This document shows, one piece after another, positions 1-57,075 of a DNA stretch of 64,000 bases. Under the pieces are notes generated by a model. That model saw only the letters and a list, made by a program, of their open reading frames with translations, searched no databases and had not been told where the DNA came from. The position numbers were made by a program, and so were the translations under genes. This DNA comes from Penicillus capitatus (Eukaryota > Plantae > Chlorophyta): assembly GCA_965649825.1 (NCBI GenBank), contig OZ287705.1, forward strand, positions 507,978 through 571,977. The letters are read 5' to 3'. Position 1 is the stretch's first letter, and every line of letters starts with the position of its first letter.

Positions 1-2210
1 TTCTCTCCTGACGACACATCCGCCAACTCCGTCCCGTTGAAACTCTCGGTAACGCTCATTGCTTTGACCTTTCATTGAATGGCGGTTCTGTGCCCCGTGA
101 ACAAAACATAGACAACACGCGCGATGGAGGTAAAGAGACACGCGTTTGTTGTTCCGTGCGAGAGCGACTGTATCGCTTTGTAGGAATCGACAACGCCGAG
201 ACCTCCAACCGAAAGCTTGCGCAAGTAAACGCACTGCAGTTACCAGGGCGAAACATTAGCGTGCTGTTTGTGAGCAGGCCAGACGTATTACAGGCAACGC
301 GGTAGAATGACGCGGCAATAACATAGCGCTGTATATTGTTGTTACTGCCTTAGGCCGGAGAGTTTTTGGCAATGACAGAAGCTAGCCGAGACGCTAACCG
401 GGTTATCGGTGTTGACGGATGGACCCAACTTCACGAGGAAACTAAGAATGGAAACATAACATACGTAACGGTGAGCGCGTCTGCTCTAATTCCCACTTCG
501 AACAGTTTCAAACGTAGAGCTTGATCAATACCGGCTCGAAGCCCGACTACAAGGAAGCGAAAGACGGTCGCACTGCACTTCACGTTGCAATAATACACGG
601 ACACAGTGAAATCGTAGAGGTCCGTCGACGCAATATTCTCTGTTTTGACGAATGGTCGTTGAGCAGATCCTCCTTAAAAACGAAGCAAACGTCGATGCGT
701 TGGACAAATTCCGCTCTACTCCAATTCTGTATGCAGCAATGTACGGATGCACAAAATGCGCAGAGGTCCGCTGCGACAACCTTCTCTGTCTTGTCTGTGT
801 TGTGATGAATGGTCGTTGAGTAGATCCTCCTCGAATACAAACCAAACATCAACGCTCCTGACTTATCCAACTCTGCTCCACTTCATTATGCAGTACGGTA
901 TGAAGCCACTGAAATCGTAAAGGTCTGTCGACCCAACCTTCTCTGTCTTTTCTGTGTTGTGATGAATGGTTGTCGAATAGATGCTCCTTGAACACGACGC
1001 AAACGTCAACCCTCTTGACGGATATCACAGGGCCCCACTTCATTATGCAGCAAGTTGGGGGCGCACTGAAATCGTAAAGGTCCGCCGACACATCATTCTC
1101 TGTTTTGTGGCAAATGGCCGTTGAGTAGATTTTCCTTGAACACTGTGAAAGAATGGCGCAATTCTGACAGAACAGTGATGGGACGTCTCTGTAATGGTGA
1201 CCTTTCTGTCACTTAGCGCTTGTCGCGTCTTTGGCCGTGTGACGTAACCGTCACTGCTGAATCGCAAACAAGTCGTGATGACTGGGAGTGAATTCTTGAG
1301 AAGTTCCTAAGAAACTTCTAGAAGTTCATACTGAATTACCTGGTTTCAGTGGGAACCTCATTGCGAACTCACTCTTAGAATTCAGCTGATTTTCCTGTCG
1401 TCACATCAGGGTCGGAGTATTTAAGCAAGGCTTTGACACAGAAAAACACCTTTCGATTAAACATCAAAGTTTACACTTGTGTTCTGAATCGCATACAATC
1501 TGTCAAAACATTCGCTGTCTATTCCCAAAGTTGCAACAAGTCGCTCTTTGCTGCAAAGCTGTTTGTGTGGCCTCCGAACTTTCGCCCATCCTCATCCAAT
1601 TTCAAGACTTCCGCTGCGTTTGTGAGATGAGCCAACACGGGAACGACTCCGGCAACAATGCTCCACCTCCACCTCCCGGCCAAGGCGAGGGAGAAATACG
1701 TGTCGTCCAAGCCGAGGACGTCGAGAGGGAGGTACAGGAAGAGGGTGCCGGAGGGAGTTCTTCACAAACACCACGCAGACATCGAGGTGAGGGATGATGA
1801 GGGACAAACTCCACTACATCACTCAGCAACTTGGGGGTACACTAGAATAATAAAGGTCCGCCGACTCAAACCCTACTGTTTTGTGACTAATGGCCGTTGA
1901 GTAGATGCTCTTTGAACACAACGCAAACACCGAGGCGAAGACCAAAGAAGGATGGACTCCACTTCATCTTACAGCAAAGAATGCTCAATATGAAAGCGCA
2001 AAGGTACCTACCTCGCCGGATTTGCTCGGATCATGGGTATACTTGCTTATGACACAGGTGCTAGTTGACAATGGTGCATCCAAGTTGGCTAAGGACGACA
2101 AAGGTCATACTCCTTATGACGTCATATGTGATGATTCAGAAAGAATTTGTTTTGCGTTAAAACTTCGACCTCCGCTCAAGAGCCTGTTGAAACCGACCGA
2201 AAAGAAATAA
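1..2210 (+). pseudogene. ANK-1: secreted-type ankyrin-repeat gene (5' end outside window), disrupted by a solo-LTR-like insertion
   Basis: Exons rebuilt at GT..AG: exon-2 remnant 1-48 (FSPDDTSANSVPLKLS), linker micro-exons, N-cap exon ending GVDGWTQLHEETKNGNITYVT, and 99-102 nt repeat exons 518-619, 667-765, 824-922, 981-1079, 1129-1855 (split by the insertion) and 1905-2003. Terminal exon 2058-2210 (VLVDNGASK...TPYDVICDDSERIC...TEKK*). Homologous exon-for-exon to ANK-A/B/C. The first micro-exon acceptor reads CAA where ANK-B has CAG. Confidence 0.85.
1144..1766. mobile_element. Solo LTR-like insertion (623 bp) with 5-bp target-site duplication
   Basis: Begins TGTGAAAGAA and ends TTCTTCACA (TG...CA, imperfect terminal inverted repeat). 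Flanked by AACAC at 1139-1143 and 1767-1771. Removing the insert plus one AACAC restores a perfect 33-aa ankyrin exon [37 protein letters not shown]-like TATTTAA at 1418-1424. Confidence 0.85.
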
Positions 2211-4084: not shown

Positions 4085-7000
4085 TCAAATTGGGGAACTA
4101 GAACATGTCTGGCATGTAGATGACAGACCAAGAATATACAGCAGGATTGTGCATGATAGAAACGCCATGAATCTTGCACTCTCCCAATAAGGATACAAGA
4201 GAAACTCGAGCTTAGCTCGAGTACTGATAGAGCACGAAACAAAACCATCAGAGCATATGCGATCGTATGGAGTGCGACCACTGTCGTCTTCAGCCAACTT
4301 GGACGCACCGCCAGCAAGTAGTACCTGTACCATATGACAACTGTACCCAAGATTCAAACGATTCTGTGGTGTACCTCTACGACTTCAACCACACCGTAAT
4401 CTGCCGCCCAATGAAGTGGAGTAGAGCCATACGTGGTTTTGGCTTCGATGTTTGCGCCACGGTCAAGCAGGACCTTCGACAGACAACGATTCTTCATAGA
4501 CAGCGAACATTGCGTCGACTAACCTTTATGGCTTCGACTTGTTTTTTCGCTACTGCTTGATGAAGTGGAGTAGTCTCTCCTTTGTTTTTGGATTCGATAT
4601 TCGCGCCACGGTCAAGGAGGACCTTTGTTGACCACCATTCTTCACGAGACGGCGAAGATTGCGTTGACAAACCTTTATGACGTCGACGCATCCTCCCATT
4701 GCTGCTTGATGAAGTGGAGTAGTCTCTCCTTTGTTTTTGGATTCGATGTTCGCACCACGGTCAAGGAGAACCTTCGACGTCGGCCAATCGTCAGAAAAGG
4801 TTGATGACTGCGTCTTCTGACCTTTACGATTCCAACCTGGTCATGATATGCTGCCAAATGAAGTGGAGTTGCGTTGCTTGAGCTTTTTGCCTCGATATCT
4901 GCGCCTCGGTCAAGAAGGACCTTCGGCAGACGACCATTCGTCAGAAAAGGTTGATAACTGTGTCGACAGACCTTTACGGCTTCGACTTCTCCGTACGCTG
5001 CCGCTAAATGAAGTGGAGTTGAGCCGTATTTATCTGTCTTGGCCTTGATATCCGCAGCGCGGTCAAGCAAAACCTTCGTTGACGAAAATTCTGCACGACA
5101 CAGAAGGTTGCGTCTACGGACCTTTATGGCTTCAACGCATCCTTCCTTTGCAGCACAATGAAGTGGAGTAGAGCCTCCTTCCTTTTTGGCTTCGATGTTC
5201 GCGCCACGGTCTAGGAGGACCTTAATTGACGAGAATTCTGCACGACACAGCGAAGGTTGCGTCTACGGACCTTTATGACTTCAACGCATCCTTCTTTTGC
5301 AGCATAATGAAGTGGAGTTGCGCCGCTTGAGCTTTTGGCCTCGATATCTGCGCCTAGGTCGAGAAGGACCTTTGGCAGACGACCATTCGTCAGAAAAGGT
5401 TGATAACTGCGTCGACAGACCTTTACGGCTTTGACTTCTCCCCACTCTGCCGCCCAATGAAGTGGAGTTGAGCCGTATTTATCGGTCTTGGCGTTGATAT
5501 CCGCACCGCGGTGAAGCAAGACCTTCGTTGACGAGAATTCTGCACGACACAGCGAAGGTTGCGTCTACGGACCTTTATGGCTTCAACGCATCCTTCGTTT
5601 GCAGCATAATGAAGTGGAGTTGCGCCGCTTGAGCTTTTTGCCTCGATATCTGCGCCTAGGTCAAGAAGAACCTTCGGCAGACGACCATTCGTCAGAAAAG
5701 GTTGATAACTGTGTCGACAGACCTTTACGGCTTCGACTTCTCCCCACGCTGCCGCCCAATGAAGTGGAGTTGCGCCGTGTTTATCTGTCTTGGCCTTTAT
5801 ATCCGCACCGCGGTCAAGCAAGACCTTCGTTGACGAGAATTCTGCACGACACAGCAAAGGTTGCGTCTACGGACCTTTATGACTTCAACGCATCCTTCCT
5901 TTGCAGCATAATGAAGTGGAGTTGCGCCGCTTGAGCTTTTTGCCTCGATATCTGCGCCTAGGTCGAGAAGGACCTTTGGCAGACGACCATTCGTCAGAAA
6001 AGGTTGATAACTGCGTCGACAGACCTTTACGGCTTCGACTTCTCCCCACTCTGCCGCCCAATGAAGTGGAGTTGCCCCGTATATATCTGTCTTGGCCTTT
6101 ATATCCGCGCCACAGTCAAGCAAGACCTTCGGCAGACGACCATTCGTCAGAAAAGGTTGATAACTGTGTCGACAGACCTTTACGGCTTCGACTTCTCCCC
6201 ACGCTGCCGCCCAATGAAGTGGAGTTGCGCCGTGTTTATCTGTCTTGGCCTTTATATCCGCACCGCGGTCAAGCAAGACCTTCGTTGACGAGAATTCTGC
6301 ACGACACAGCGAAGGTTGCGTCTACGGACCTTTATGACTTCAACGCATCCTTCCTTTGCAGCATAATGAAGTGGAGTTGCGCCGCTTGAGCTTTTTGCCT
6401 CGATATCTGCGCCTAGGTCGAGAAGGACCTTTGGCAGACGACCATTCGTCAGAAAAGGTTGATAACTGCGTCGACAGACCTTTACGGCTTCGACTTCTCC
6501 CCACTCTGCCGCCCAATGAAGTGGAGTTGCCCCGTATTTATCTTCCTTAGCCTCGATATCCGCACCGCGGTCAAGCAAGACCTTCGAGGTCGACCATTCG
6601 TCAGAAAACATGAACAAGTGCGTCGACAGACCTTCACGGCTTCAACTTTTCCGTACGCTGCTGCTTGATGGAGTGGAGTCGAGCTGTAGTCATCTGTCTT
6701 GGCTTCGATATCCGCGCCACGGTCAAGCATGACCTTCGTTGAAGAGAGTTTTGCACGACACAGCAAAGACTGAGCCGGTGGACCTTTATGGCTTCAACAT
6801 TTCCGGTCGCTGCTGCTTGATGAAGTGGAGTCCAGCCGCTATTGTCTGCAGTTTCGACGTCTGCGAGCTGGTAAAGGTGAAACTGTGTCCACAGTTGTGA
6901 CCATGGAAATCTGATTTGGTTTGCACACACCTTCTCGAGTCCATTACTTCCATCCGCAGCCCTCTTATGAAGTCGAGCCTGCCTGTCGATTCCGACAGCC

Positions 7001-12859: not shown

Positions 12860-14257
12860 TGGCACCGGGAAATGGCGTTGTGCGCATCTGGGTCAAAGTG
12901 GATACGAATGCTTGGACTCCTGAGTGATGCTGATGAGAGCGTACGATTTAATCGCCTCGGTTCTATTCTCCCCTACGACGATATCGCAACACTCGAAGTG
13001 GTCGCGTCTTCGAAGGCAACTTCGTTGAATTGAATAGACATCGCAATGCTCGGCGTCGAGAGGGGCTGTGCAGGTATGTCTATCAGTGTGTGATTTCTTA
13101 TGGACTTACTAGTCAAGCGGTAGTCACAAGCTGTGTCCGACATCTGTGAAGCTAGGGTGACCGTCGTTTGGCCATTTTAGAAGTTCCAGCAGCTGTCGCT
13201 GTCAGTGACGTGGACAACGTGTGCACGACAGTCGGCTACGATGTGACCCGTTTAACATTGTCGTACGGTGTGTATTGCTGTTAAGACAGAGAAACCGAAA
13301 TGGCTGAACAAGAAAACAAACGCATCACTCTTCGAGATGCGATAGAAATCCACAAAGAACTGCTCCCATTACACCCTTCTGTCTCGATCCCTCGTGCACA
13401 GCAAGGGGATACCGGACAGAAGAGACATCGGATAACCCAACGTTCACTAAACGAATCCGGACTGCAAGCCACAGCGAAATCGATACACAGAAGGTACGTC
13501 TACAGGCGCGATGACGGGATAGCAGAACAAAACACTATCGTCACGATTATCGCTGTTTGGCGAACGGCAGTCAGACCTTCTGGAATGGGCTGAGCCGACC
13601 CGTGCCACCAGCAGCATGGAGATGCGAGGAATCTCGCTTTTGCACAACGACAAGACCACAAACCAACGGATCGTCGATTGGCAAATGTGCGTTTTGTTCG
13701 ACCTAGGTGATAGATAGGCGCTTCGCGTCGATGCTGTTGTAAACAAAGGCGGCTGCGAGTCCCTTCTGTCCTTTTCCGCCGTCACACAAAACGGCGACTC
13801 CGTGAACGCGTTCGCCACCTTGACGTCACCGCCTTCGACTCGCAGACCACTAAGAACATTAGGCGTCTGAGAATGTCACCTGTCATCGTTGATCGATCTG
13901 CAGTCTTCCTAGATGCAAAGGACTAATCGGATGCAAAGAGTCCTGATGCAAGCGCCAAGGGACGTCTGCTTCAGACGCACCGCGTCCAGAAAAACCAGCG
14001 GAAACGCTGCCATATACACAATCACAAGAGTAATCTGGCAGGCCAGGAGCAGTTTGCCGTACTTAACGCGAGATTCGCGTAAGGATGCTTCGTTCGCTCA
14101 AAACACTTCAATCATTAAACACCTTCTTTCAGAGTTGCAAGTTGAGATGGAGCTTTATGTACAGCACCATCAAGGTAAAGTACTAGAACATGTCTGGCAC
14201 ACAGATGCCAGACCGAGGATAAAAACGACAGGATGCGCATGACAGAAACGCCATGAA

Positions 14258-17042
14258 TCATGCGTTCTTCGTAGAAGGAGACAACAAGGACTCGAGTTCA
14301 GATACAAGCGAATCATAACAGTCACTCTCGAGACATATGACGTCATAGGGAGTATGACCGTCTTTGTCCTTGACCGATTTGGATGCGCCGTTATCAACCA
14401 GTGCCTGTGACATATTGGACAACTACATCCAGGATCAGAGAGAATGTGCGACGTACGGTTACGGTATAAGCATCTCCTTCCTTTGCTGCATAATGAAGTG
14501 GAGTCTGTCCTCTGTTGTCCGTCGCTTCGATGTCTGCGCTCTCTTGGAGGAGATCCTACGACGGCGGTGGTCGTTATTCTTACGAGACGGCGAGGATTGT
14601 ATTAACGGACTTCTACGGTTTGAACGTTTCCGTGCAGCGCTGCCCTATGAAGCGGAGTTTGCCCTTCGTCATTCTTTGCCTCGATATCTGCGCCCTTCTT
14701 AATGAGGAACTACGCCGACAGTCATTGCTCTCGTGAGACGGCGAATGTTGCAACGACGGCGGACCTTTGCGATGTCCTCTTTGCCTTCGTCTGCTGCCAC
14801 ATGAAGCGGGGTCCATAAGTTATCATCCGTCGCATCGACCTCTGCGCCTTTTTGAAGGAGAATCTACGGCGGCGGCGGTCGTTATTCTTGCGAGACGGCG
14901 AAGGTTGCATTAACGGACTTCTACGGTTTGAACGTCACCGAATCGTGCCGCTGCCTTGTGTAGCGGAGTTTGTCCTTTAACATCCTCTGCAGCGATATCT
15001 GCGCCCTCTCGAAGGAGAATCTACGCCGACGGTTATAACTCTCGCGAGACGGCGAGGGCTGTCAACGAACCTTCACGGATTCAGATTCTCTATAATATGC
15101 TGCCAAATGAAGTGCAGTCCATCCCTCATTGTCTGACGCCTTAATGTCAGCGCCTTCTTTAAGGAGAACCTACGCCGACGACCGTTCGTCGCGGGACAGT
15201 AAAGGATTGCGTCAGCAGACCTCCATGAATTCGACGGGGTGGTATATCGCTGCCTTGTGAAGCGAAGTTTTTCCTTCATCGTCCTTTGCATCGATATATG
15301 CGCCTTTTTGAAGAAGAATCTACGCCGACGGTTATAACTCTCGCGAGACGGCGAAGGTTGCGTCAAAGAACTCTTGCGGCTTCGGCGTCTCCGTACAGTG
15401 CGGCCCTTTGAAGTGGAGTCCATCCCTCATTGTCCGTCGCCTCAATATCTGCGCCTTCTTGAAGGAGAATCTACGCCGACGGTCATTATTCTCTCAGGAC
15501 GGCGAGAATTGCATTTACGGACCTTTACGGCGTCGTTTTCTCCGTACCTTGCTGCAAGATGAAGTGGAGTCCATCCATCTTTGTCCTTCGCCTCAATGTC
15601 TGCGCCTTCTTTAAGGAGGATCTACGCAGATGGTCGATATTCTCGCGAGACGGCGAATGTTGCAACGACGGACCTTTGCGATGCCCGTTTTGCCGACCTC
15701 TACTGCCACATGAAGCGGCGTCATTCCAGCAACATCCTTCGCCTCAATATCTGCGCCTTCTTGAAGGAGAATCTACTCCGGTGACTGTTCGTCACGGGAC
15801 GGTAAAGGACTGCGTTAGCAGACCTTTAGAGATTCGACCATTTCGAACAGCGCTGCAATATGAAGCGGGGTCCATCCGAATATATCCTTCGCCTCCGTAT
15901 CGGCGCCTCCTTGAATGAGAAGCTACGCCGACGGTCATTACTCTCGTGAGAAAACGAATGCTGCATCTAAGAACTTTTGCTGGTTCGATGTTTCCGTACA
16001 GTGCTACCCAATGAAGCGGAGTCCTTTCTTCCTTATCCTTCGCCTCAACGTCTGCGCCTTCTTGAAGGAGAATCTGCACCGATGACTGTTCGTCACGGGA
16101 CGGCAAGGGACTGCGTTAGCAGACCGCAGACCTTTAGAGATTCGACGCTTTCGTACAGTGCTGCAATATAAAGCGGAGTCCATCCCGCATTATCCTTCGC
16201 CTCAATGTCTGCGCCTTCCTTAAGGAGGATCTACGCCGACAGTCGTTATTCCGGCGAGAAGGGAAAAGTTGCAAGGGTTGACCTTTATGATTTCGACATC
16301 TCCAAACTCTGCAGCTGCGTGAAGCGGAGTCCGTCCACCTTTGTCCTTGGCCTCGATGTCCGCGCCTTGGTCAAGAAGATCCTGCGTTCGGAGCTGTCCA
16401 ACTTGGGAATTCGAGTAGAGTTATCCACACCTTCACGCGTTGTACATCCCCACTCCTAGCTGCCTCATGAAGGGGAGTCCCTCCGTCGTCCACTGAAAGC
16501 CATCCGTTAATAACGACAGTCCAGTTGGCTTTTCCTTGATCATGTGCGCTCTTACACAGTAACAGCGTTTCGTCGCGTCGCGTTGTTGACGCAGCACTCT
16601 ACCTGGTAAGGCTTCCGAGTAACTTCGCCGCTCTGCACAAAACCATGACGCCAGTTTCCGCCGCGGGTTAGTGTACGTAGTTTGTTTACTTGTTTGAACT
16701 TCTGGTCCGAGGCTTCGGAGTTGTCGATTCCTACGAAGCACGACGACCGAGCATGCGCGCAACAGCAAACACGTGTCTCGTTACCTCCGTTGCGCGTTCC
16801 GTCAATGTTCTGTAGGTGGCCCATCGGAGCCGCCATTTAGTAAAATCGCAGAGCAACAGGAGCCTTACCGAGAATCTTAACGGGAAGGAGTCGACGGACG
16901 CGTCGTCGTGAGGGAAGTCTGCGGCGCAGCAAGGCATCACCGTCGACACAGATGCATGGACGACGGTACCGCGGCTGCTTGTTGACGGGCGCGGACCAAG
17001 GAGCAGAAGGCAGAGCCACAAGCTGAAGGCAACCAGCTTCAT
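14258..17042 (-). CDS. ANK-B: secreted ankyrin-repeat protein (signal peptide, micro-exon linker, N-cap + 13 internal repeat exons, Cys-containing C-cap, no anchor)
   Basis: ATG 17042 ([24 protein letters not shown]). Repeat exons of 99-102 nt (e.g. 16381-16283, 16230-16132) with consensus [27 protein letters not shown], separated by ~50-58 nt phase-0 introns that mostly end CGTAG. Terminal exon [27 protein letters not shown] (TGA 14260-14258). Confidence 0.9.
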
Positions 17043-22290: not shown

Positions 22291-23080
22291 GTTCTTTCGT
22301 ACACAAAAGGAGAACAGGACGCCGAAGTTGGAACTCCGTTTCCCGTGCTCGCAAAAAGGCGGTTCGAATCGAAGCGTTTAATCGACGTTTTGCCGAATTG
22401 ATCTAGCGACGGAGCTGTTCTTTGCATGTATCCCCTTTGCAGCGGTATGTGACGGCGTCCGGACAGACTCGTTTACAACGCTGCTTCTAACCTTGTCCGT
22501 TCGCCAACCAGCAGCGTCTCCACAGACGCAACTCTGCAAATCGCGGTCGAGACGCAGCCGCTCGTGCAATGCGACGTTCGATGCTTCGATCCTGCGACTG
22601 AACAAAGCGCTTCGCGCTGTCGGTCGTGATGCAGAACGCGGAGCGAATGTAAAACCGCTAGTCTTGTTATTCAGTCGACGGATGAACGTCGTAGAAACTC
22701 AGAACAAAGATGACCGTCGCCAGCAGAAAGAGATCCTTGAACTGCCGACTTGGAAAGCACTTGAAGAGGAAACGTTCTGAGAACGGCGAACGCTGGAAAC
22801 GTTGCGACTTGTGTGCGAATCGATTTTGACTACAACGACGTCGCCGAAAGGACAAACCGGAAGCGATGCGACTGAATACATTACTCACGCCAAGATCCAC
22901 CCGAAGCCTCCGAGCATTCGTGGCCGTCGCCGACTCAAGTGCGTTCCGAGTGCACTCCAACAACCTTCACCGGCGGAGATCGTCAACTGAATCGAGGCTG
23001 CCTGAGGCGGTCGTCGTTCTGCCCGCAGAACAGAATTGCAAAAATTCGCCTTACAGAATCGAAGACAAGGACAAAGGCGC

Positions 23081-24335
23081 GATGGCGACTGGCGAGATGA
23101 CAGGTCGGCTGACTGGACTGCCGAGCGGCGATGGCGACTGGCGAGATGACAGGTCGGCTGACTGGATGTCGAGGATTGATGGCGACAGGCGAGATGACAG
23201 GTCGGGTGAGTGACTGGACTGAGGAAGCGCGATGGCGACTGGCGAGATGACAGGTCGGCTGACTGGACTGTCGAGCGGCGATGGCGACTGGCGAGATGAC
23301 AGGTCGGCTGACTGGACTGCCGAGCGGCGATGGCGACTGGCGAGATGACAGGTCGGCTGACTGGACTGTCGAGCGGCGATGGCGACTGGCGAGATGACAG
23401 GTCGGGTGAGTGACTGGACTGAGGAGGCGCGATGGCGACAGGCGAGATGACAGGTCGGCTGACTGGACTGAGGAGGCGCGATGGCGACAGGCGAGATGAC
23501 AGGTCGGCTGACTGGATGTCGAGGATTGATGGCGACAGGCGAGATGACAGGTCGGGTGAGTGACTGGACTGAGGAAGCGCGATGGCGACTGGCGAGATGA
23601 CAGGTCGGCTGACTGGACTGTCGAGCGGCGATGGCGACTGGCGAGATGACAGGTCGGCTGACTGGACTGCCGAGCGGCGATGGCGACTGGCGAGATGACA
23701 GGTCGGCTGACTGGACTGCCGAGCGGCGATGGCGACTGGCGAGATGACAGGTCGGGTGAGTGACTGGACTGAGGAGGCGCGATGGCGACTGGCGAGATGA
23801 CAGGTCGGGTGAGTGACTGGACTGAGGAGGCGCGATGGCGACTGGCGAGATGACAGGTCGGGTGAGTGACTGGACTGAGGAGGCGCGATGGCGACTGGCG
23901 AGATGACAGGTCGGGTGAGTGACTGGACTGAGGAAGCGCGATGGCGACTGGCGAGATGACAGGTCGGCTGACTGGACTGTCGAGCGGCGATGGCGACTGG
24001 CGAGATGACAGGTCGGCTGACTGGACTGCCGAGCGGCGATGGCGACTGGCGAGATGACAGGTCGGCTGACTGGACTGTCGAGCGGCGATGGCGACTGGCG
24101 AGATGACAGGTCGGGTGAGTGACTGGACTGAGGAGGCGCGATGGCGACAGGCGAGATGACAGGTCGGGTGAGTGACTGGACTGAGGAGGCGCGATGGCGA
24201 CAGGCGAGATGACAGGTCGGGTGAGTTGACTGAGGAGCGGCGATGGCGACTGGCGAGATGACAGGTCGGCTGACTGGACTGCCGAGCGGCGATGGCGACT
24301 GGCGAGATGACAGGTCGGCTGACTGGACTGCCGAG
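23081..24335. repeat. Minisatellite, ~25 units of 48/49/53 bp
   Basis: Core ATGGCGAC(T/A)GGCGAGATGACAGGTCGG followed by one of three tails (CTGACTGGACTG(C/T)CGAGCGGCG; GTGAGTGACTGGACTGAGGA(A/G)GCGCG; CTGACTGGATGTCGAGGATTG). A block of variants recurs with ~350-bp period. Confidence 0.95.
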
Positions 24336-24529
24336 GAAACGAGTCGATCGCTTCCAGTCTCGACGAGTCCAAGCCAATAGACAACATAAAGGGAAATCTA
24401 TTTCATGTCGGCCCCTGCGTCGACGTTTGCACTAAACTCGATGAGAACTTGCAGGAGCGGCGATTTTTCGAAGAACCCTTCACTCTCGTTGGAGACTCGC
24501 AGGAACCATTACTAAGATCTCTTACTTGA

Positions 24530-36840: not shown

Positions 36841-38237
36841 ACTTCTTAGGAGAACTAGGGCAACATGCCTCTGGAGACGCCCCTCCTACTTGTGAGAATT
36901 TCTCTCTTTCCCGAAGTGCAATGCAAAGGGCGCATCGATGTCAGGTTTCTCCATCCTCCGGCGCAACTTGAAGCTTGTGGAGATGATCATCCACGGATAA
37001 TGACGGCAAGTGTGTGTGAGCTGGTTAACCGAATACAGTGTTCACTGTCGCAACGAACAGAAATCGCGGTGCGTGTACAATGACTGTCTTCTCTGTCTCA
37101 TCCACCGTCGGTGGCAATGGCGCCATCCGACACCAGACTCGAATTTCCGAAACGCATCCGTCTGTAGACGTGAGTCCATAAGTTCTATAATAAAATCGCG
37201 ACAAGGTGGCACGTTTCATCAGTAATCACTTACTCACCGCTGTCATACAAACCATAGACAAAGACGCATCTTACTGAAATCACACACGTAGATGAAGGAT
37301 AGCCCATCCAAAGACACTATAAAATGCTGGCTGATCGAAGAAGTTACCATTCCGTACCTGTATCCCTTGCGACAGAGGCTAGGCGATCACGAACGCCAGA
37401 AGAACATCTGTTGCTACCCAGAGACGCGATTCGCATATTCAGCGAGCTGTGTGATTTCGATGTCATCAGAAGAGCGAACGGGAAGAAGCACGACTGTATT
37501 TTTGACATATACTATACTGTGATCCCATAGCGCAGAGGTTCAGAAAACGAGACTGCTCTTCTTAAAAAGGCGTCTATGCACAAGAATACAAGGTATATAT
37601 ACTCACTGTCTTCTCATTCGTTTTCATTCGTAGGTAGGGTCACGTCAGTCGTCTTCTGGCAACTACAATACTATAATAAAGGCATCCACGCGTTTCAGGA
37701 ATCCATACTCAGCGACGTCGAGATGTTGCAAATGATCTCTCTCCCGATGCCATCGATACCTGACAATCTTCATCTGCATTCGTCGTGCTTTCATGATTTC
37801 GACGTTTTATTCTTCTCACAGGACGATCGAGTAGCAAATTCCGTTCCGTTTATACGTTACAGCTGTCTGTACGCGATGTTTGCGCAAAAAGGTAACCTCA
37901 CTTTAGTAGACCCGTGCTTGACGTAGAACTGATTGTCTGAAAATCAGGCGGGCAACATTCCCTTAGCGTTCCTACCGCTCATTGAACAGAACGAGCCAAG
38001 CTTCAAGGCGGCCAAAACTGAGCCGTCTGTTTAAAGCAGCTGCCGGCTATGCGAGATGCGCTTAACGATGCCTCGTTCGTTCAAAACACTTCAATCATTA
38101 AACACCATGCAAAGTTGCAAGTTGAGATGGAGCTTCATAAACAGCGCCATCGACATAGAGCACTAGATCATGTCTGGCATCTAGATGACAGACCAAGGAT
38201 AAAAACAACACGTTGTGCGTGACACAAGCGCTATGAA

Positions 38238-40259
38238 TCATGCGCTCTTCGCAGAGGGAGACAACAAGGACTCGAGTTCAGATCGAACACTCTCAGGACA
38301 AGATGCATAAAGATATTCACAGATGCAATCAAACGGAGTCTGACCAGAGAGGTCCTTAACCGACTTGGACGCGCCACCATTAATCAGTGCCTGTGCAATT
38401 GAACAACTAATTCCAGGATCTAAGCAAATCTGCAGGTACCTTTACGGTTTCAATCCTAGCGTGATCTGCTGCCAGATGGAGAGGCGACCTGCCGGCTGCG
38501 TTTTTGGCATCGATGTTCGCGTCACGGACAAGAAGGACCTTCGTTAACGATCATGCGCATTCATCATGAGACATCGAAGAGTGCATCGACGTACCTTTAT
38601 GGTCTTAAGTCTTCCGCCGCGTGCTGCCAAGTGAAGCGCACGATGTCCGTACTTGTCTTCGGCCTCGATGTCTGCGTCACCGTCAAGGAGGACCTTTGTC
38701 GACGGCCATTCTTTACGGACAGCGAAGGTTGCGTCATCGACCGACCTTTATGGCTTCGAATCTTCCGTCCTCTGCTGCCCAATGAAGTGGAGCCCTGCTG
38801 AATGTATGCTCCCTGGCCTCGGTGTCAGCGCCACGATCAAGGAGGACCTTTGTTGACGACCATTCTTTACGGACAGCGAAGGTTGCGTCGTCGACGGACC
38901 TTTACTACTTCGATTCTTCCGTCTATTGCTGCGAAATGAAGCGCACGCTGTCCGTACTTGTCTTCGGCCTCGATGTCTGCGTCACCGTCAAGGAGGACCT
39001 TTGTCGACGGCCATTCTTTACGGACAGCGAAGATTGCGTCGACGACCGACCTTAACGACTTCGCCTTTTTTTCCCCTTGCTGCCACATGAAGTGGAGGGC
39101 CGCTTAATGTATGCTCCCTGGCCTCAATATCAGCGCCACGGTTAAGGAGGACCTTTGTCGACGACCAATCTTTACGGACAGCGAAGATTGAGTCGTCGAC
39201 GGACCTTTACGACTTCGACTCCTCCGGTATCTGCTGCGAAATGAAGCGCACGCCATCCGTTCATGTCTTCGGCCTCGATGTCAGCGCCACGGTCAAGGAG
39301 GACCTTTATTGACGGTCGTTCTTTACGGACCGCGAAGGTTGCGTCGTCGACGGACCTTTACGACTTTGACTCTTCCGGCCGATGCCGCCAAAAGAAGTGG
39401 AGGACTGCGGTGTCCATAATCCTTGGCCTCGATGTTCGCGCCACCGTCCAGAAGGATCTTCGTTGACGATCCATTCACATTCATCATAAAGCATCGAAGA
39501 TTGCGGCGTCGAACGCACCTTTACGGCTTTAGCTTTTCCGGCGATTGCTGCCAAGTGAAGTGCAGTCCGGTGGTCTGAGTCCTCTCTTGCCTCGAGAGAT
39601 GCGCCTTCATCAAGCAGGTCCTAGGTTCGAAACTGTGCGACGCGGGAATTCGAGTAGACGCGCCGCCACCTTCACGTGTTTTGCTTTTCCTCTGAACGCT
39701 GCCTCATGAAGCGCGGTCCATCCGTCAACGCCGACATGTCTCTCGTGAGCTGTTCCTTTATTGAGCGCTCCCTTAGACGGTAATGACCATTTGCGGCTTT
39801 GAGACATAGAGGCTCCATTCACCTGGTAGGTTTCCAGAATTTCCACACAGCCCTGCTCAAAACATCAAGTTGTTTTTCCGCACGGGTAACCGTACCCCAG
39901 CCGTTCTTTGGATCTTTGGGTGCAAAGCTTCCTTTTGTTCGATCTCTAAACAGCGACAGCTGAGCGCACGGGGAGCAACATGCGCGTACTATCTTACCCT
40001 CATACGTGTCGTCTCCGTTCTAAGGAATTGGTCGTCGAAGTCACAGCCGCTTAGTCAAGTCGTTAGAACAGCATGTGTCCTACCTCAGATCTGAAGAAGA
40101 CGGAGTCGGCGAACGCTGCGTCTGTAACGAAGTCTGCTCAGCAGAAGACATCGCCTTCGACACAGATGCATGACCGACGACGGTACCGCGGCTGGCCCTG
40201 GACTTGAGCGGGGCGACGAGCAGAAAGCAGAGGCATGTGTGAAGAACGACGCACTTCAT
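38238..40259 (-). CDS. ANK-C: secreted ankyrin-repeat protein (signal peptide, micro-exon linker, N-cap + 8 internal repeat exons, Cys-containing C-cap)
   Basis: ATG 40259 (MKCVVLHTCLCFLLVAPLKSRASR), same 5' exon layout as ANK-A. Repeat exons VLLD(R/G)G/DADIEA.. are separated by ~52-nt introns ending AAG. Terminal exon ALINGGASK..TPFDCICEYLYASC..PSAKSA* (TGA 38240-38238). Confidence 0.9.
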
Positions 40260-50803: not shown

Positions 50804-51781
50804 ACACATGCAATCGTTTTTTCTATCAAGCATCCGTCCGTTCAGAACTTTGCCAGAGGACGGTGGATTGCCGGCGTTCTACATTTTGTCTCGCATGAGG
50901 ACGGAAACCCGATTGGCGGGTTCATTGTTTCGCATGCCAACGAACTCGGATTGGCATGTGCTGTCTCTACCGTTACTGAGCTTCGCTGAATGTTGATCAC
51001 GAATCAACACATTCGACAAGCTCGATTTAATTATGGCCAAATGAATGCCCGATTCTCCAGTTATGTATGTCAAATCCAGTCAAGTTGGACTCTATGTTAG
51101 CAGTCTGGCCTGTTTCGTAAAAAAGATTGAGTTCCTCTACTGTGTTCCTCGCACGAATCGAATACGGTGATGGAGTGAAGAGACCCGACAAACTTCATCA
51201 ACCTCTCTGGCTCTGCTTCCGCGAAAGATTCTGTCGCGTTCACGATCTTCCAATCATCCGTTCGGCGACCCGAAAGCGTTACTGTTATCCATCCAGGCAA
51301 TCTTGACTCCGTGAAAGAAAAGACAGATTGTTCTGAGCAGCTCGACCGATTGTTCTGCACTCTCGAAATGCAATGCAAACGCAGAATCACTGTCAGATTC
51401 TGCCGTCCGCCGACGCATCTCCAAGGAGAAGAGTTCGAGTCTCGCCTAACTACTGTACACATTTCCTGTCTACCCGACAATGGTTAGTTGCTTGTTCGTC
51501 GTTAGCGTCCTCGTGGACGTCTCCGAGCACGCCGCCGCCTACTGCTGAGGATTTAATTAAGAAAGATGAAAACGGCAGAGTTGCGACTATTCCTGTCAGT
51601 CAGTCTGGCGATTACAAATGACGCCGACGGTATTACACAGCAAAGACATCGTCTATCGTCTAGGTCTAAAGTATCACGCATCTAAAGCGTTCGCTCGCAG
51701 TCTTCCCCGAATAAACATGGCTCCGCAGCGCAAAAAGAAAAGCATTCAGAGAAGGCCCGGCCTCGACACAGCGCTGACCGC

Positions 51782-54700
51782 TCAGGCAGCGGGGCACCCT
51801 TCGTCAGAGACGGCATCCGCGCACGGAGCCGAGTTGTGCCGATCTGGAGGACGGATGTTGCGCATCGTCGCGAACAGTTGGACTTTCCTCGCCAACTCGG
51901 GCACGAGGCTTCGGATCTTGACGGAGAAGGAAAGCAGGCCCATTCCGTTCTCATACGTCGCCAAGAAGTCAGGATTGAGCAGCTCCAGCTTCAGGTCCGT
52001 GATGAGGTGGACGCCCGCGTACATACGATAGAGAACGTAGGCGAAGAAGGCAACATTGGTGACGAAGGCAAAGACAAACATAGAGGTGCAGCCGAGCGGA
52101 CTGGATGTCGGGTCGATCGAAATGACGGCGGAATAGAAGACGACGATGGAGCAGACCAGCGACAGCGTCTCCAGATAGTTGAGATCGATGGAATTGTTCA
52201 CGGCGACCCACGCCTTCCCCAGTCCCGACAGACGGACGAGACGGAAGAGCCCTCCGGCGTAGTCGGGAAAGTAGGATGCGTTCTGCGGAACTTGAAACGG
52301 ACAGACGAGGGCTTGCAGGGCGACGGCCATGATCAGGATGCCCGCGCACAGCGTCGCCTGTAGACTGGGACTGAGGTGCACGGAGAAAGAGACGACGGCG
52401 GCGATCATCGTCTTCCTCGTGAGGATGACCGACTCCCACGACCTCCTGAACCACTCCTTCCGGTAAGCGCGGTAGATAAACCAGTAACGCGCGATGAACT
52501 CGTCGTCTCCTCTGTGCTTCGTGTTCAGAGGCAGCCAGACGATGATCAGCAGGACGAAGAGGAGGGCGAGCGCGAGGCCCAAGAAGCCGACGATGTCGAG
52601 GGGTAGGTGCGCTCCTTGGAAGCAGGTGACTTCCATATCCGCCGCCCACACCTGCCGTTCCATCGCCTCCCTGGTGTACTGCTTGTAGGGATGGTCTCCC
52701 GGCAGCAGCTCTTCGACCTCGACGCAGTTGACGGCCCTCAGCAGCTCTCTCACGATCTTGAGGTAGAAGAAGTGTATCGAGACGAGGGAGATGACGGTGA
52801 GATACGTCACGAGGCGCGCCAAGCTGATGCGTGACGATGGGCTGGCTGACGCGGATCTCCACGATTTGACGCGCAGGGCCAAGCAGCCGAGGGCGCACAC
52901 CAGTAGCAGAGCGACCAGGACGATCCAGGGAACGGCGAGCCGAGTCCACGCAGCGGCAATGGACGCGGGAACTGTGCCGTTCTGGAAAGAGCATTCGACT
53001 TCGGCGGACATGACGGCGAAAGAGAGACCGGAGAGGGAAGCTGCTCGCACACAGCGTCACTCTTCCGACAGCGTCTATCCTGACGTACCTTCGGCAGTGA
53101 GCAGACCCTCCACGTAGTGTCTCCATTCCAGATGCACCCCGAGCGCAACGCTGGTGATCTGCAGGTAGTTGATGAGGATCTAGAGGCGGCGCTGAATACC
53201 AAACGCAAGGGGGCGATACGGACGGAGCGCACCTTTAAGGTTTCCGTCAGCTGCACAGTGGTCACGAGGCACTTCGCGTGGAGGATCTGATCCTGGGTGG
53301 CGGCCGGTCCGTCGGCGGCGTCGGGACTCGCTACGAAGCACAACGCGATCGCAGCAGTTTCGGATGGCACCGAGGGCGAACCTCCAAACTGTCCACTTCG
53401 CCGTGGCTCGACGGCTGCCGTTCTGCTGATGTGACGCGTTCGCCTGAACAAGTGGCGCCTGTCTCTCAACGTCTCGCGTTCTTCGTGCTTGAGGTGCTCA
53501 ACGGTGGAGCCCATAGAGGCCAACGTGATGGCGCAGAAGACTCCGACGAAGAAGAACGGCCAGACGCAGCTCAGGAGGAGAAAACCTGTCGAGGAACCTC
53601 CCCTCGGACACTCTTCGCAGTTTCCCTCGTAGGAGTGACCGAATCCGGACGCGCAGGATCCGCAAAGGAATCCTTCGTAAGCTTCGCTGCACTGAGGGTA
53701 GTCTGCGAAGCTCGGCACGGGTCCTCTCTCGAGAAGGCGAATACCCTCGAGCACGCGGTCGGGATCGCCGTAGAACGACTCCAGCTTCTGCCTCCTGCCG
53801 TCGTAGACGCAGGCCTTCGCGTGGATGCATTCCCTGAAGACGGGAGAGAACGGATTGGAGTGCCAGTAGCCGTCCTGAGGCACCATTGCCGCGCCGCCGT
53901 GGCACTCGGCGTGGCTCTCGCAAGGTCTGCACGGCAGCGAAGGATCCAGTCCATAGAAGCCTCGAGGACACAGGCTGCACTCCTTGGCCACAGTCGTCTC
54001 GCCCACGTGGCACTCTCGCGTCGAGAAAGGGATCTCCAGTCGGATGCTTGGGTTGCTCTCGCTGACGATCGTCAGCGTGTCCGAGATGCCGATGCCGTAG
54101 GCAAAGGTGCTGTCGATCACGGCGACCCCTTCGACGGTCGTATACCGCAGGCCTCCCGTGATGGATTCGGAGACGAGCGCCAGCGTCAGATTGGCGTCGG
54201 CGATGCCACGGGTGATCGTCTGGTTGAACGCATCCTCCACAACGATGCGCAGCTCGGCGGAACAGGAGACGTTGCCTCTGTCCTCTTCGCACGGAACGGC
54301 CAGCTTCTCGCCGCTTGCGACGGTCTTCAGCGGTCCACGGTGCCCGACGACGGACAGCTGCGCGGCGTTGGATCCTGCGTTGGCTCCCTGGCCGTTTACC
54401 CGGCCAAGACACTCGTTGTCGTAGATGTCTGAGCAGTGAGCAAGCATCTGCTCGCGTTTCGGCTCGGAAGCATTGAACTGCCAGACGAGGACTCTGTCCC
54501 AGTCGCCTGGACGGCAGGAGAAGGCGATACCGTCCGGCAGCGAAGAGAACACTCCACCGGCGTACTCTGCTCTGTTTCGCGTGACAGTGACGTTGTGGAA
54601 AAGAAAGCGCTGACAGGAGGTGATGCCGAACAGCGCCGTGAAGCAGGACGTCCTGTTGGACTTGTTCCAGTACAGATCCTCCATCCGGACGGCCATACCA

Positions 54701-57075
54701 CCTGCGAAGATCGGTGGAGCGCGCGCTCGGCGTGTGCGACGAGGCTGACCTCCGACCACGGCTTCGTTCTCTGCGAAGAGTGCGTTCTGGAATGCGATCT
54801 CGACGATGCTGAAGGAGGCGACGCTCTGGAGCTCCAGATTGAAGCCGCCGCCACAGCCCTCTTCCGAAGCGGTCAAGTGTCTGACAGGACCCAGATGGCC
54901 GGTCTCGGCATCGACGTCGGGGAATGTTGTGTTCTCGGAAGGAATGGGCGAAAACGTCCGCCTCTCTTCGATCAGCCTCCCGATCTCTGGAGACGTCGAC
55001 CGCAGCGCTTTGTTCCCAGAGAAACGCGCTCCCTCGACCTGCGCAGCACGAACGGCTGAGACTGTGTGGCAGGCCTCGCAGGTGACATGCATTCAGTGTC
55101 GAAAAGGCGTGGCTTCCTGGCAGGTACTGCACGCCGCCGCCAACTGCCGCGATGTTGTTCCGTATGATGACCGGCCGTCCGTCGTCGGTTGCGAAAGTGA
55201 CGTTGGGAGCGTCGAGGATGTCGATGCCTCCGCCCACGATGGCGCGGTTGTCTTCGATCAACATGTCGCGGAACGCAACCGTCATCGACTGGCTCGTTAT
55301 CGTCAGTCCTCCACCGATGCCGTAAGCTGTGTTGTTTCGTATGACCAGCGCCGAGAGATCGAGCAGCCCTGCTACACGAACGACGGTTTGCTGCGAGAGA
55401 AACAACAATGAGCGAGGATGACGACCTCCGCTGTTCGACGCAATCGCGCCGCCGTAGTAGGCGTACGCCTCTTCGAGGACAGTCACGGCTTCCGGGTCGT
55501 CTGGATCGCGTTCGGTCTTGAGGAGGGTCGGTCCGGCGGAGAGAATGATGCCGCCGAAGAGGGATCTGCTTCGACGGAAGCGTGAACGGGAGATGGTCAT
55601 GTGGACGGCCATCAGACACAGCGAGCCGCCACTGACGATGGCGGCGTTTCTGTCGAACTGACACGCGGTGATTCTGCTGTCCGCGGCGGAGTTTCCCGTT
55701 CCTCGAAAGTACATAGCTCCTCCGACGACGGCTCGGTTGCCGAGGAAGAGCGAGTCCTTCAGTCTCCACGTGGCGGCGAGATCGTCCATCGCCTCATATG
55801 CCAGAGCTCCGCCTCTCTCGCCGTCGTGTTCGAAGAACACATCGACATTCAGCGCATCTCTCTGTGATCTGCAGAAGGCGACGTTGTCCTGGAAAACGGT
55901 GTCCGAGACAAAGAACACCCTGTCGAAGTCGGTATCCGATTCGCCGCCGCCCCTGTCTAACACGCTGACCGCGCCGCCACCCTGGCATCCCGTATTCTCC
56001 GAGAAGACGGAAGCTCGGATGTCGATGGAGAGGAGACTGCGTGCCAAGATGGCGCCGCCCGTGCCGAAGATGCGTCGCGTCTCGCTGCCGTTCGCCATAA
56101 ACGGCTCCTCTGCAATCTCGTCCGTCTTGATCCCCAGGGCTGCGTTCCTTGCAAACTCTGAATCCTCGACGGTGAGCGATGCGTTTCGGACGCTGCTTGC
56201 GTAGATGGCGCCTCCAGCGCTGGCTGCCGCGTTGCTCTCGAAGGTGGACATTCGGATGTCGAGGTCGGCATTCTCCGCAAATATGGCGCCGCCATCGAGT
56301 CCGCTGTTGTTGAGGAACACGCACTCGTGAAAGCGAAGCACTGCACGACGACAAGACGCTCCAGGGCAAGACTTGGTGCGAACAGCAGCGCCAGGTGCCG
56401 GACGCTCTGTCCGACCGTTCTGAGTAAACTCAACGGCATCGAACTCCACTGACTGTGCGCCTCTAAACGGAAATGACGTGTCTGGCTCAACGACGACAGC
56501 CGAATCACCACATCCGACGAAACGCAGGCGTTCAAGGCGGACGTCCGCTCCTCTGCAAAACCGCTCCCTGGGTCGATGGACGTTATGGCGAAAGGTCTGT
56601 CTCACCTGACGAACAATGCAGTGGCGGCGCCGTCTGGTCGACAGCGGATGGTCGTCGGCTCACTGCCTCTTCCTTCCAGGACGACAGCATCGCGACTGCG
56701 GATATGGACGGCGCTTCTCAGGGCGATCTCCTCGGAGACGAAGACGATTCTTGTGTCGACATCGGTCGCCGCGGCGGCGGCGGCGGCATCGCGGAGCTGA
56801 CGTTCCGAACGCACGGTGATCTCCCTTTCGCCCTGGCCTGGCGTAGCTCGACGTCGATTCCCATCTAGAACCAGACGCCTTGTCGAAAGCAGCTGTGCGG
56901 CTCTTCGGCGACCTCGTTGTCCGTGTACGCGTGGCAGCAGAAGGACGAGAGCGACCAAGACGAGCACGTGGAATGCCGTCGCGTTTCTTCTGATCGCGCG
57001 ATCCGTCGGACGGCGCGAAAGCGCATCGGGTATTCTCGTCTTTATCTCTTCGATGGCGAACAAACGAACTTTCAT
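51782..57075 (-). CDS. Large membrane protein: signal/anchor, POMP-type GGA(I/V)/FxxN beta-helix repeats, Cys-rich (ephrin-receptor-like/GCC) module, ~9 TM C-terminus
   Basis: Hydrophobic leader VLVLVALVLLLPRVHG. Repeats FLNNSGLDGGAIF, FESNAAASAGGAIY, FSENTGCQGGGAVSV, FLGNRAVVGGAMYF. Cys-rich CSLCPRGFYG..CRPCESHAECHGG..GYWH and CSEAYEGFLCGSCASG. Multi-TM segment KILINYLQI..FIARYWFIYRAYR..WESVILTRK. Introns include a GC donor at 55090. The ATG choice (57075) is uncertain. Confidence 0.85.

Follow-up and report, generated by a model that had tools for sequence, protein, structure and literature searches.

A run of sixteen AAG|GT-bounded introns in an ankyrin-repeat gene of Penicillus capitatus, probably explained by recent cassette amplification

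In the 64,000-nucleotide stretch of Penicillus capitatus DNA analysed here (the window), sixteen consecutive introns of one ankyrin-repeat gene, ANK-A, read AAG|GT at both ends. The question raised by this locus is whether such a run is a device by which repeats are left out of the transcript, a trace of how the introns arose, or a consequence of how the gene grew. We consider it very likely that the run is a recently amplified cassette array, explained by descent and tandem duplication.

The ANK-A gene and its repeat introns

The introns of ANK-A were called from frame restoration and repeat homology, on sequence alone. The gene model opens with a short first exon that is uncertain, continues with 17 internal ankyrin-repeat exons and closes with an exon that holds the C-terminal capping repeat (18 ankyrin exons). 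When spliced, it gives a continuous ankyrin-repeat frame of 651 aa ending with TGA (4085-4087); the frame extends into the conserved 3' flank because the family stop codon is mutated in ANK-A. The 5' end is uncertain, and the family N-terminal cap is degenerate in this gene. The internal exons are 99 or 102 nt long, and each encodes one complete ankyrin repeat (VLLDRGAD...TPLH...VEAVK). A protein search with the full spliced model retrieved only generic ankyrin proteins (identity, 47% or less) and no orthologue or transcript; an Rfam scan of the 64-kb window gave zero matches, and a Pfam scan of its eight longest open reading frames gave Chlam_PMP/beta-helix only. The features are as follows (L005 is a collinear locus described below; T1 and T2 are intron types).

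4085-6953, minus strand: ANK-A gene model; 19 exons, one open frame when spliced
6868-6926, minus strand: putative first intron; donor uncertain (the frame demands TGT|GTGCAA), ends in CAG
6734-6783, minus strand: repeat intron 1; 50 nt, AAG|GTC...AAG|GTC, older variant akin to T2, 100% identical in L005
6582-6631, minus strand: repeat intron 2; 50 nt, AAG|GTC...AAG|GTC, older variant akin to T1, 96% identical in L005
4921-6581, minus strand: amplified core, cassettes 3-13; 102-nt 'W' and 99-nt 'Y' exons, introns 3-13 of types T1 and T2
6429-6479, 6127-6177, 5974-6024, 5672-5722, 5370-5420 and 4921-4971, minus strand: T1 introns (51 nt)
6280-6329, 5825-5874, 5523-5572, 5221-5270 and 5074-5121, minus strand: T2 introns (50 or 48 nt)
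4772-4821, minus strand: repeat intron 14; 50 nt, diverged T1-like, AAG|GTC...AAG|GTT
4623-4672, minus strand: repeat intron 15; 50 nt, AAG|GTT...AAG|GTC, clusters with ANK-C introns
4474-4523, minus strand: repeat intron 16; 50 nt, AAG|GTT...AAG|GTC
4325-4374, minus strand: last intron, before the C-terminal capping repeat; GAG|GTACAC...ACAG|GTA, ordinary YAG acceptor

The 16 repeat introns (minus strand, 4474-6783) are all GT..AG introns of 48-51 nt in phase 0, with AAG|GT(C/T) at donor and acceptor alike. The preceding exon always ends in AAG, the intron starts with GTC (13) or GTT (3) and ends in AAG, and the next exon starts with GTC (13) or GTT (3), so that the junctions reported by the first-pass annotation were confirmed at every boundary. 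This 2.3-kb stretch has 32 occurrences of AAGGTY on its minus strand, against about one expected from the shuffle rate of the whole window (54.7 per 64 kb, both strands); with 16 introns that derive from one another by copying, this excess over chance is uninformative on function. A branch-like motif (CTGAC, TGAAG or TGCAG; a motif match only) is found 19-21 nt from the 3' end, and in 16 of the 16 introns the 16 nt immediately ahead of the terminal AG contain no other AG. Since no AG stands between this motif and the terminal AG, the introns fit the rule that the 3' splice site is the first AG past the branch point (PMC7317903). With GT-AG ends, restoration of the frame, a candidate branch motif and use of the first AG downstream of it, they have the features of U2-type introns and would most likely be removed as ordinary constitutive GT-AG introns.

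The likeness of the sixteen introns comes from very recent and repeated tandem duplication of a single unit, an ankyrin exon with its short intron. Tandem repeat finder gave periods of 149-152, 302 (94% matches) and 455 bp (91%) for the array. The introns comprise two alternating types plus five older variants (about seven sequence clusters), and in the identity matrix for the core the identity within types was 96-100% for T1 and 90-100% for T2. Introns 3, 6 and 10, introns 5, 8 and 13, and introns 4 and 9 are 100% identical, as are exons 4 and 7 and exons 5 and 8. The marks of a tandem array are all present: an exon plus intron as the unit, intron homology between units, the same phase and position, and a difference in copy number. 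Variation is unevenly spread in part of the core, in that 2 of 51 columns are variable in the T1 introns versus 23 of 102, across all codon positions, in the adjoining W-type exons (pS 0.12 and pN 0.075 for the W exons, 0.024 for the T1 introns). The Y-type/T2 cassettes are without this contrast (5/99 exon sites vs 3/50 intron sites).

Paralogues and a second copy of the locus

ANK-A and three further genes of the window are paralogous as whole genes, the conservation extending into their 5' and 3' flanks.

617-2055, plus strand: ANK-1; same intron family, TAG or CAG acceptors
14405-16430, minus strand: ANK-B; 12 internal introns at 14556-16282, same position and phase as those of ANK-A
38391-39669, minus strand: ANK-C; 7 internal introns at 38539-39518, homologous to those of ANK-A, all ending in AAG

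The 40 internal introns of the four genes align over their full length (GTC.GT.GAC.CAA..TTCGC.GTC..GTGA.GAATGG.CGTC), and introns of the more distant relatives L006 and L007 match the same pattern. In every gene examined, the family introns are in phase 0 and follow the 16th codon counted from the T of TPLH (the 17th in one ANK-B repeat). The last intron of ANK-A belongs to a separate conserved intron family; its alignment partners are the final introns of ANK-B, ANK-C and ANK-1. The division of acceptors drawn by the first-pass annotation, with seven AAG acceptors in ANK-C, six of them before GTC, and YAG in the repeat introns of ANK-B and ANK-1, proved correct: the seventh ANK-C acceptor is followed by ATC, and the ANK-B internal acceptors are TAG in 11 and CAG in 1, with next exons starting mostly with ATT or ATC. 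The first and last introns of ANK-C end in TAG and CAG. The genome-wide frequency of AAG acceptors was approximated from 55 non-redundant introns of the family taken from genes other than ANK-A and ANK-C (YAG, 51; AAG, 3; GAG, 1) and three proteasome-gene introns of a related contig (TAG, CAG and CAG); all 3 of these AAG acceptors are also followed by GT. For a related proteasome alpha subunit the top solved structure was 7qve, the spinach 20S proteasome; for a 55-residue stretch of ribosomal protein uL30 the top matches were 60S L7 chains, apparently vertebrate, with chains of plant name close behind, a mixed signal on affinity. The A at -3 is invariant in 16 + 7 + 7 copies (ANK-A, ANK-C and L005), and -4 and -5 vary.

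It might be supposed that AAG acceptors are due simply to ANK-A and ANK-C being sister genes, and the neighbour-joining intron tree does place their AAG introns together, apart from the YAG introns of ANK-B and ANK-1. However, the flanks disagree, ANK-B being closest to ANK-C (75% similarity) and ANK-A reaching 68-69% with either. With the flanks joining ANK-B to ANK-C and the intron tree joining ANK-A to ANK-C, the AAG state requires either that two changes occurred or that the arrays exchanged sequence by gene conversion.

A public contig (L008) is 100% identical to the window from 24413 to 4258, the whole array with its 18 ankyrin exons included; because this contig is independent, the ANK-A array is not an assembly artefact. 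L005, from the same ENA sample as L008, is a collinear locus 92-96% identical to the window, and its ANK-A has 7 internal introns, all AAG|GT, and 9 ankyrin exons, versus 16 introns and 18 exons in the window; the difference in repeat number shows that gain and loss of cassettes take place in the DNA itself. Only the end cassettes of the two copies match one to one, and the order of cassettes differs. Some L005 introns are 96-100% identical to window introns, their exons only 80-90%. When ANK-B was compared between two copies of the locus, the introns differed at 12 of 422 sites and the exons at 5 of 836; introns evolve faster than exons there, which indicates that the family introns are not intrinsically constrained and is consistent with intron-like behaviour of these predicted introns.

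From these observations the following course may be proposed. ANK-A is a member of a clustered, fast-evolving ankyrin-repeat family in a short-intron eukaryote, and at each boundary between repeats the family has a phase-0 intron of some 50 nt, homologous throughout. On the branch that led to ANK-A and ANK-C, the intron would have gained or kept an A at -3 (AAG, not TAG or CAG), beside the Val codon (GTN) that opens the next repeat, and the Lys codon AAG closing each repeat, with the obligatory GT and AG, would complete AAG|GT at both ends. The array then grew by tandem duplication of blocks of one, two or three cassettes, probably through unequal crossing-over or replication slippage. Since each copy inherits its boundaries, sixteen identical boundaries would stand for one or few mutational events and subsequent copying. 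Three points strain this account: neutral copying and divergence does not predict the contrast between T1 introns and W exons, for which homogenisation of introns or mosaic exons are needed; the conflict between flanks and intron tree calls for the two changes or the gene conversion mentioned above; and the invariant A at -3, which fits descent with homogenisation, might also reflect selection for AAG. The first-pass annotation had itself named copy-paste of one ancestral cassette as the finding that would count against its splicing proposal, and the pattern is essentially that. Its further suggestion, that the direct repeats guide gain and loss of cassettes in the DNA, holds for gain and loss (9 vs 18 exons), not for AAGGTC as the guide; these 5-6 nt are unneeded for recombination because the whole 150-, 302- or 455-bp cassette is homologous, with identical stretches of at least 85 nt.

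Alternative readings of the AAG|GT run

The proposal of the first-pass annotation was that the spliced junction AAG|GTC serves as a new donor, or that the AAG acceptors are skipped for their weakness, and that one gene thereby yields variable numbers of ankyrin repeats; we regard this as highly improbable. Because all exons are phase 0-0, any run of repeats could be removed in frame, as had been claimed, and the acceptors carry an A at -3, of the kind by which a purine weakens the 3' splice site (PMC7317903). Scored with a donor matrix from 55 other family introns, which is inflated by intron homology (GTCC...), the ANK-A junctions reach 5-11 bits, inside the family range of real donors (9.9 +/- 4.2), compared with about 2 bits for junctions of the other family genes and 8-14 bits for the real ANK-A donors. 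The claimed donor-like character of the junction is thus borne out from -3 to +4 but is lost at +5, where the exon starts (GTCTTG, GTCCTT, GTCCTC and similar) have T or C and never G, whereas the real donors have G at +5 in 15 of 16 and T at +6 in 14 of 16. As in recursive splicing, AG|GU would be recreated at the junction (juxtaposed AG|GT, 16 of 16) with an acceptor present downstream; unlike it, ANK-A is without a strong donor (GTRAGT-like, with +5G, or the +6U), and its host introns are 48-51 nt rather than very long (about 50 kb on average at known recursive sites; PMC8184009). Regenerated splice sites are normally suppressed in the systems studied, and in the published recursive cases the sites either are errors kept suppressed or belong to introns of great length. 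A consensus fold of 28 family introns had 0 pairs and the single-sequence z scores were inconsistent (-2.8 to +0.9), with no docking or selector structure, and copying alone fully accounts for the AAG|GT pattern. Retention of introns in frame, which would add 16-17 residues between repeats, AAG (unlike TAG) keeping the last codon readable, seems to us extremely improbable. Eight of the 16 introns have a length of 3n and are stop-free (seven 51-nt T1 introns and one of 48 nt), as are 4 of the 7 internal introns of L005 (51 or 54 nt; by frame reading), but a run of 17 codons escapes stops by chance with a probability of about 0.45, and these copies do not count as independent cases. The 50-nt introns throw the frame out of register, and the added residues would sit within helix 2 of the repeat. 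The features could also act jointly: with weak AAG acceptors, exon starts that resemble donors, and single-repeat exons in phase 0 all copied as a set, transcripts would lose repeats by skipping or re-splicing, or gain units by retention of 3n stop-free introns, always in frame, and one locus would give graded ankyrin binders in addition to rapid germline shuffling of cassettes through the homogenised introns; to this reading we give little credence.

Two further readings concern the DNA. That AAGGTC at both ends is a trace of intron origin, left by tandem duplication of an exonic AG|GT proto-splice site or by an introner with target-site duplication, is very improbable. The tandem-duplication model of intron gain predicts the same short sequence at both intron ends, and AAG|GTC...AAG|GTC has the expected form, as in AG|GY duplication (PMC2891723). 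In difference from that model, past 3 shared bases the intron ends are unlike the start of the downstream exon and the end of the upstream exon (shuffle tests of 18 introns against flanking exons, z -1.5 to 2.8, no consistent signal, swapped controls equally high), GT, AG and the Lys and Val codons dictate 4 of the 6 repeated bases, and the homologous introns of ANK-B and ANK-1 are without the repeat. Like introners, the array packs many short, near-identical introns into one region of the genome. However, the family introns come with their exons and are restricted to one homologous position within a single repeat family; within the window the intron sequence is confined to that ankyrin boundary, and in the window and the few loci searched 25 of 25 credible matches to the intron start lay at ankyrin repeat boundaries, with no near-identical intron at non-homologous sites or in unrelated genes, so that introners were rejected. 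A metagenome scan with the gapped intron-family pattern gave 3 matches, of which the two inspected were chance-like and not ankyrin arrays. The other reading is that the conserved introns act as recombination or gene-conversion tracts by which hypervariable ankyrin exons are shuffled in frame for germline diversity, AAG|GT being a passenger; this is possible, though we think it rather doubtful. In favour are the low variation of T1 introns beside W-type exons, the L005 introns that are closer to the window than their exons are, the differing cassette order, and the faster evolution of ANK-B introns, which speaks against intrinsic constraint. MHC class I loci have homogenised introns beside diversified exons. 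The T1 introns of ANK-A are likewise near-identical, and in the exons next to them about 10-20% of sites differ, with the difference that the contrast lies within one tandem array, not among alleles, and rests on small counts. Against shuffling, these counts are also non-independent, the Y-type/T2 cassettes are without contrast, and similar outcomes result from plain unequal crossing-over at any point of the 150-bp unit; pN/pS values lie under 1 (0.33-0.60) and so do not demonstrate positive selection.

Cassette copying in a repeat-protein gene

ANK-A shares with known tandem duplication of exon (or exon-intron) cassettes in repeat-protein genes the one structural repeat per exon, symmetric exons of the same phase, homologous introns, higher-order periods of two and three cassettes, and a copy number that varies between close relatives (18 vs 9). 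It differs in that its cassettes, each an exon of 99 or 102 nt with an intron of 48-51 nt, are unusually small and, with many of them 96-100% identical, unusually young, and in the minority AAG acceptor of the copied intron. Where introns descend from one another by copying, no function need be invoked for a run of identical, slightly odd splice sites. Programmed skipping of repeats in RNA would be of real interest if true, but nothing in the ANK-A sequence calls for it; cassette copying is an ordinary way for repeat-protein genes to expand and contract, and no special splicing device is indicated. ANK-A is a clean, very young example of a repeat-protein gene that expanded as a cassette of roughly 150 bp was duplicated one, two or three units at a time, and its near-identical introns beside diversified exons hint that cassettes may be shuffled in frame in what is likely a family of binders.

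Exon-intron boundaries of ANK-A

The ankyrin-repeat gene ANK-A was read in its spliced frame, and its whole-gene paralogues in the window were located as follows.

6953-4085, minus strand: ANK-A, almost wholly ankyrin repeats
16430-14405, minus strand: ANK-B, whole-gene paralogue
39669-38391, minus strand: ANK-C, whole-gene paralogue
~617-2055, plus strand: ANK-1, whole-gene paralogue

Between 6783 and 4474, ANK-A contains 16 GT..AG intervals of 48-51 nt each, separated by exons of 99 or 102 nt, each of which encodes one complete repeat (VLLDRGAD... to ...TPLH..A..G.VEAVK). All 16 intervals are in phase 0, and their removal gives a single open frame of 651 codons; a frame shift would result if the 50-nt introns were kept. 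Every exon upstream of an interval closes with AAG, the intervals start with GTC (13/16) or GTT (3/16) and end with AAG (16/16), and the downstream exons start with GTC (13) or GTT (3). With the junctions read and the frame restored, the first-pass description of sixteen introns bounded by AAG/GT (the slash marks the junction) was correct in every detail, and its counts for ANK-C (seven AAG acceptors, GTC next in six) and its TAG or CAG acceptors for ANK-B and ANK-1 were also confirmed. The motif AAGGTY occurs 32 times in 2.3 kb of the ANK-A strand, against ~1 copy expected from the window-wide shuffle rate (the G+C content of the window is ~52%). An assembly artefact is excluded as the source of the array by a contig of an independent public assembly (L008; ENA ERZ25074695 ctg334143), whose sequence matches the window from 24413 to 4258 with 100% identity.

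Two types of predicted intron alternate along the array, T1 (51 nt, GTCTGTCGACGCAGTTATCAACCTTTTCTGACGAATGGTCGTCTGCCAAAG) and T2 (50 nt, GTCCGTAGACGCAACCTTCGCTGTGTCGTGCAGAATTCTCGTCAACGAAG), with five older variants at the array ends. Counting from the 3' end, a branch-site-like motif (CTGAC, TGAAG or TGCAG) is found at 19-21 nt, and the 16 nt that precede the terminal AG are free of any other AG; thus, AAG is the first AG past the predicted branch point, as in the usual rule of acceptor selection (PMC7317903). No near-identical match to the spliced protein was found in the protein collection searched.

Eight of the 16 repeat introns (4474-6783, minus strand; seven 51-nt T1 and one 48-nt intron) are multiples of three without an in-frame stop, so that their retention would preserve the frame; their last codon stays open thanks to the AAG acceptor instead of TAG. 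Many repeat exons end in ...GCC GTA AAG/GTC (e.g., 6483-6488, 6181-6186 and 6028-6033, minus strand), where GTAAAG forms a second in-frame donor-like site, 6 nt upstream of the inferred donor, whose use would remove Val-Lys. On the plus strand (4797-6460), the antisense of 12 of the 16 introns also reads AAGGTT, from a conserved intronic CAACCTT, which is probably incidental.

The intron family and its origin

At least four whole-gene paralogues (ANK-A, ANK-B, ANK-C and ANK-1), with conserved 5' and 3' flanks, are present in the window. An intron occupies the same codon and phase at every repeat boundary of these four genes and also of more distant relatives on two other contigs (L006 and L007). 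The internal introns of the family, including T1-like and T2-like forms, can be aligned from end to end; the first and last introns constitute two further conserved families, with YAG ends in all four genes of the window. The 3' ends of ANK-B (...CGGCGTAG/ATTCTC) and ANK-A (...GCCAAAG/GTCCTT) introns are homologous, so that AAG/GT represents one variant of a single ancestral intron. In the neighbor-joining tree, the AAG introns of ANK-A and ANK-C cluster separately from those of ANK-B and ANK-1, whereas the flanks of ANK-C are most similar to those of ANK-B; this conflict calls for two separate changes or else for exchange among the arrays.

Among 55 non-redundant family introns outside ANK-A and ANK-C, the acceptor was YAG in 51, AAG in three (GT next in all three) and GAG in one, and three introns read in a proteasome gene of a related contig have the ends TAG, CAG and CAG. 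AAG acceptors thus form a minority in this lineage (~5% of the sample), a share roughly as in other eukaryotes. Introns in a conserved gene of related contigs are 52-65 nt in size. Note that three of the 18 repeat introns of the more distant family members on L007 (4014-4061, 8303-8352 and 11316-11360) show AAG followed by GT; the state thus reappears, infrequently, in other family members.

An intron born from the tandem duplication of an AG/GT site would carry the same bases at both ends (PMC2891723), as do the introns of ANK-A. However, four of the six bases of AAGGTC are dictated by the GT, the AG and the codons for Lys and Val, intron ends and flanking exon ends show no resemblance past three bases, and the repeat is absent from the homologous introns in ANK-B and ANK-1; a footprint of this kind is not supported. 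An introner-type origin is not supported either, because the intron sequence was found neither away from ankyrin boundaries within the window nor in the metagenome scan.

Copying and turnover of cassettes

Tandem repeat finder gave periods of ~150 bp, 302 bp (94% matches) and 455 bp (91%) in the ANK-A array, and several introns, as well as some exon pairs, are 100% identical. These periods and identities show that the 16 introns are not independent of one another and that the array core (cassettes, i.e., exon plus intron, 3-13; 6581-4921) arose by very recent amplification in blocks of one to three cassettes.

A profile of the C-terminal capping exon of the family recovered a protein that shares 96% identity with the tail of ANK-A, on a contig (L005; ENA ERZ25074695 ctg340182, 20x coverage) that matches the window collinearly, with 92-96% identity, across ANK-B, ANK-A and ANK-1. 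This contig and L008 (16x) came from one sample at similar depths, and they represent either two very divergent haplotypes of a single organism or close strains that live together. ANK-A of L005 has seven internal introns, all with AAG/GT(C/T), and nine ankyrin exons, where the window copy has 16 such introns and 18 exons; one-to-one orthology is restricted to the two cassettes at the start and the one at the end, and the inner cassettes differ in number and order. Precise gain and loss of cassettes at the DNA level, as had been proposed, is thus supported, but the process has no need of the 5-6 nt of AAGGTC: the homology on offer is the whole cassette (the 3' third of the exon plus the T1 intron provide at least 85 nt of identity).

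In the core (4921-6581), six T1 introns vary at 2/51 columns, and the six W-type (102-nt) exons preceding them at 23/102 columns, at all codon positions; pooled divergence was 0.12 (synonymous), 0.075 (non-synonymous) and 0.024 (intron). The variable W-type sites are concentrated in the 5' two thirds of the exon, which correspond to the loop and the surface of the first helix. Plain copying does not account for the contrast between introns and exons, and its likeliest reading from the alignment is intron homogenisation, or mosaic exons generated by recombination or gene conversion. A secondary and rather doubtful hypothesis is that the introns serve as suitable in-frame points of exchange within a family of binders that is diversifying. 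The near-invariant T1 introns beside diverged W-type exons favor it, as does ANK-B, where comparison of the locus copies revealed no intron constraint (differences at 12/422 intron and 5/836 exon sites, three of the latter at third codon positions). The faster change of the ANK-B intervals than of the exons also fits their prediction as introns. However, the counts behind the contrast are small and non-independent, and the cassettes of Y-type (99-nt) exons and T2 introns do not show it (5/99 versus 3/50 columns).

The conserved 3' flanks of the four genes carry an inverted repeat (GGTCTG.CATCT...TGCCAGAC) shortly past the family stop codon, at the following positions.

4085-4180: ANK-A
14150-14270: ANK-B
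38150-38270: ANK-C
2215-2290: ANK-1

In ANK-A and its L005 copy, the stop TGA is replaced by AGA, so that ~30 further codons are read through this element in ANK-A. In ANK-1 (~1143-1758, plus strand), ~615 bp of unrelated sequence separates a truncated repeat exon from the next repeat; this segment, an insertion or else an intron of exceptional length, is collinear in L005. Elsewhere, a 49-bp tandem repeat (22885-24387; ~25 copies, 89% matches), across which three reading frames are open, lies within a 500-aa ORF on the minus strand. A stretch of raised G+C (51700-57800, ~60%) includes a 1053-codon ORF (53501-56659, minus strand) with Chlamydia-PMP repeats and a right-handed beta-helix, whose closest relatives (47-77% identity) occur in several copies on the ENA contigs related to the window. 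On a related contig (L001, 19866-21935), a large NACHT protein with HEAT/PDS5-type repeats is encoded next to housekeeping genes (Arp8-like, proteasome alpha and uL30). Contigs related to the window were found only in ENA metagenome assemblies. Among solved structures, the proteasome subunit was most similar to entry 7qve (the spinach 20S proteasome), and uL30 to 60S L7 chains that are probably from vertebrates, with plant-named chains close behind, a mixed indication of affiliation.

Repeat skipping and the nature of the array

The first-pass annotation had also proposed that spliced junctions regenerate a donor-like site and could allow recursive or combinatorial skipping of repeats. The junctions do resemble a donor at -3 to +4, but not at +5: 15 of the 16 real ANK-A donors have +5G (and 14 have +6T), and no exon start has this functionally important base. 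When a donor matrix was derived from the other 55 introns of the family, the ANK-A junctions scored 5-11 bits, versus 8-14 bits for true ANK-A donors, 9.9 ± 4.2 bits for all real family donors and ~2 bits for junctions of other family genes, values inflated by intron homology (GTCC...). Published recursive sites are located in very long introns, and the exon junction complex normally keeps regenerated sites at junctions silent, its loss exposing them as errors (PMC8184009, PMC8605326). No conserved RNA structure able to organise the choice among cassettes was found in the repeat introns, and in-frame skipping is permitted by any phase 0-0 exon array and is not special to AAG/GT. We therefore consider programmed or recursive skipping in ANK-A very improbable. 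In the proposal as a whole, turnover of cassettes in DNA is upheld by the copy number in L005, and recursion in RNA is unsupported. The ANK-A feature belongs to a known kind, the tandem array of exon-intron cassettes; it is young and carries a minority AAG acceptor by happenstance.
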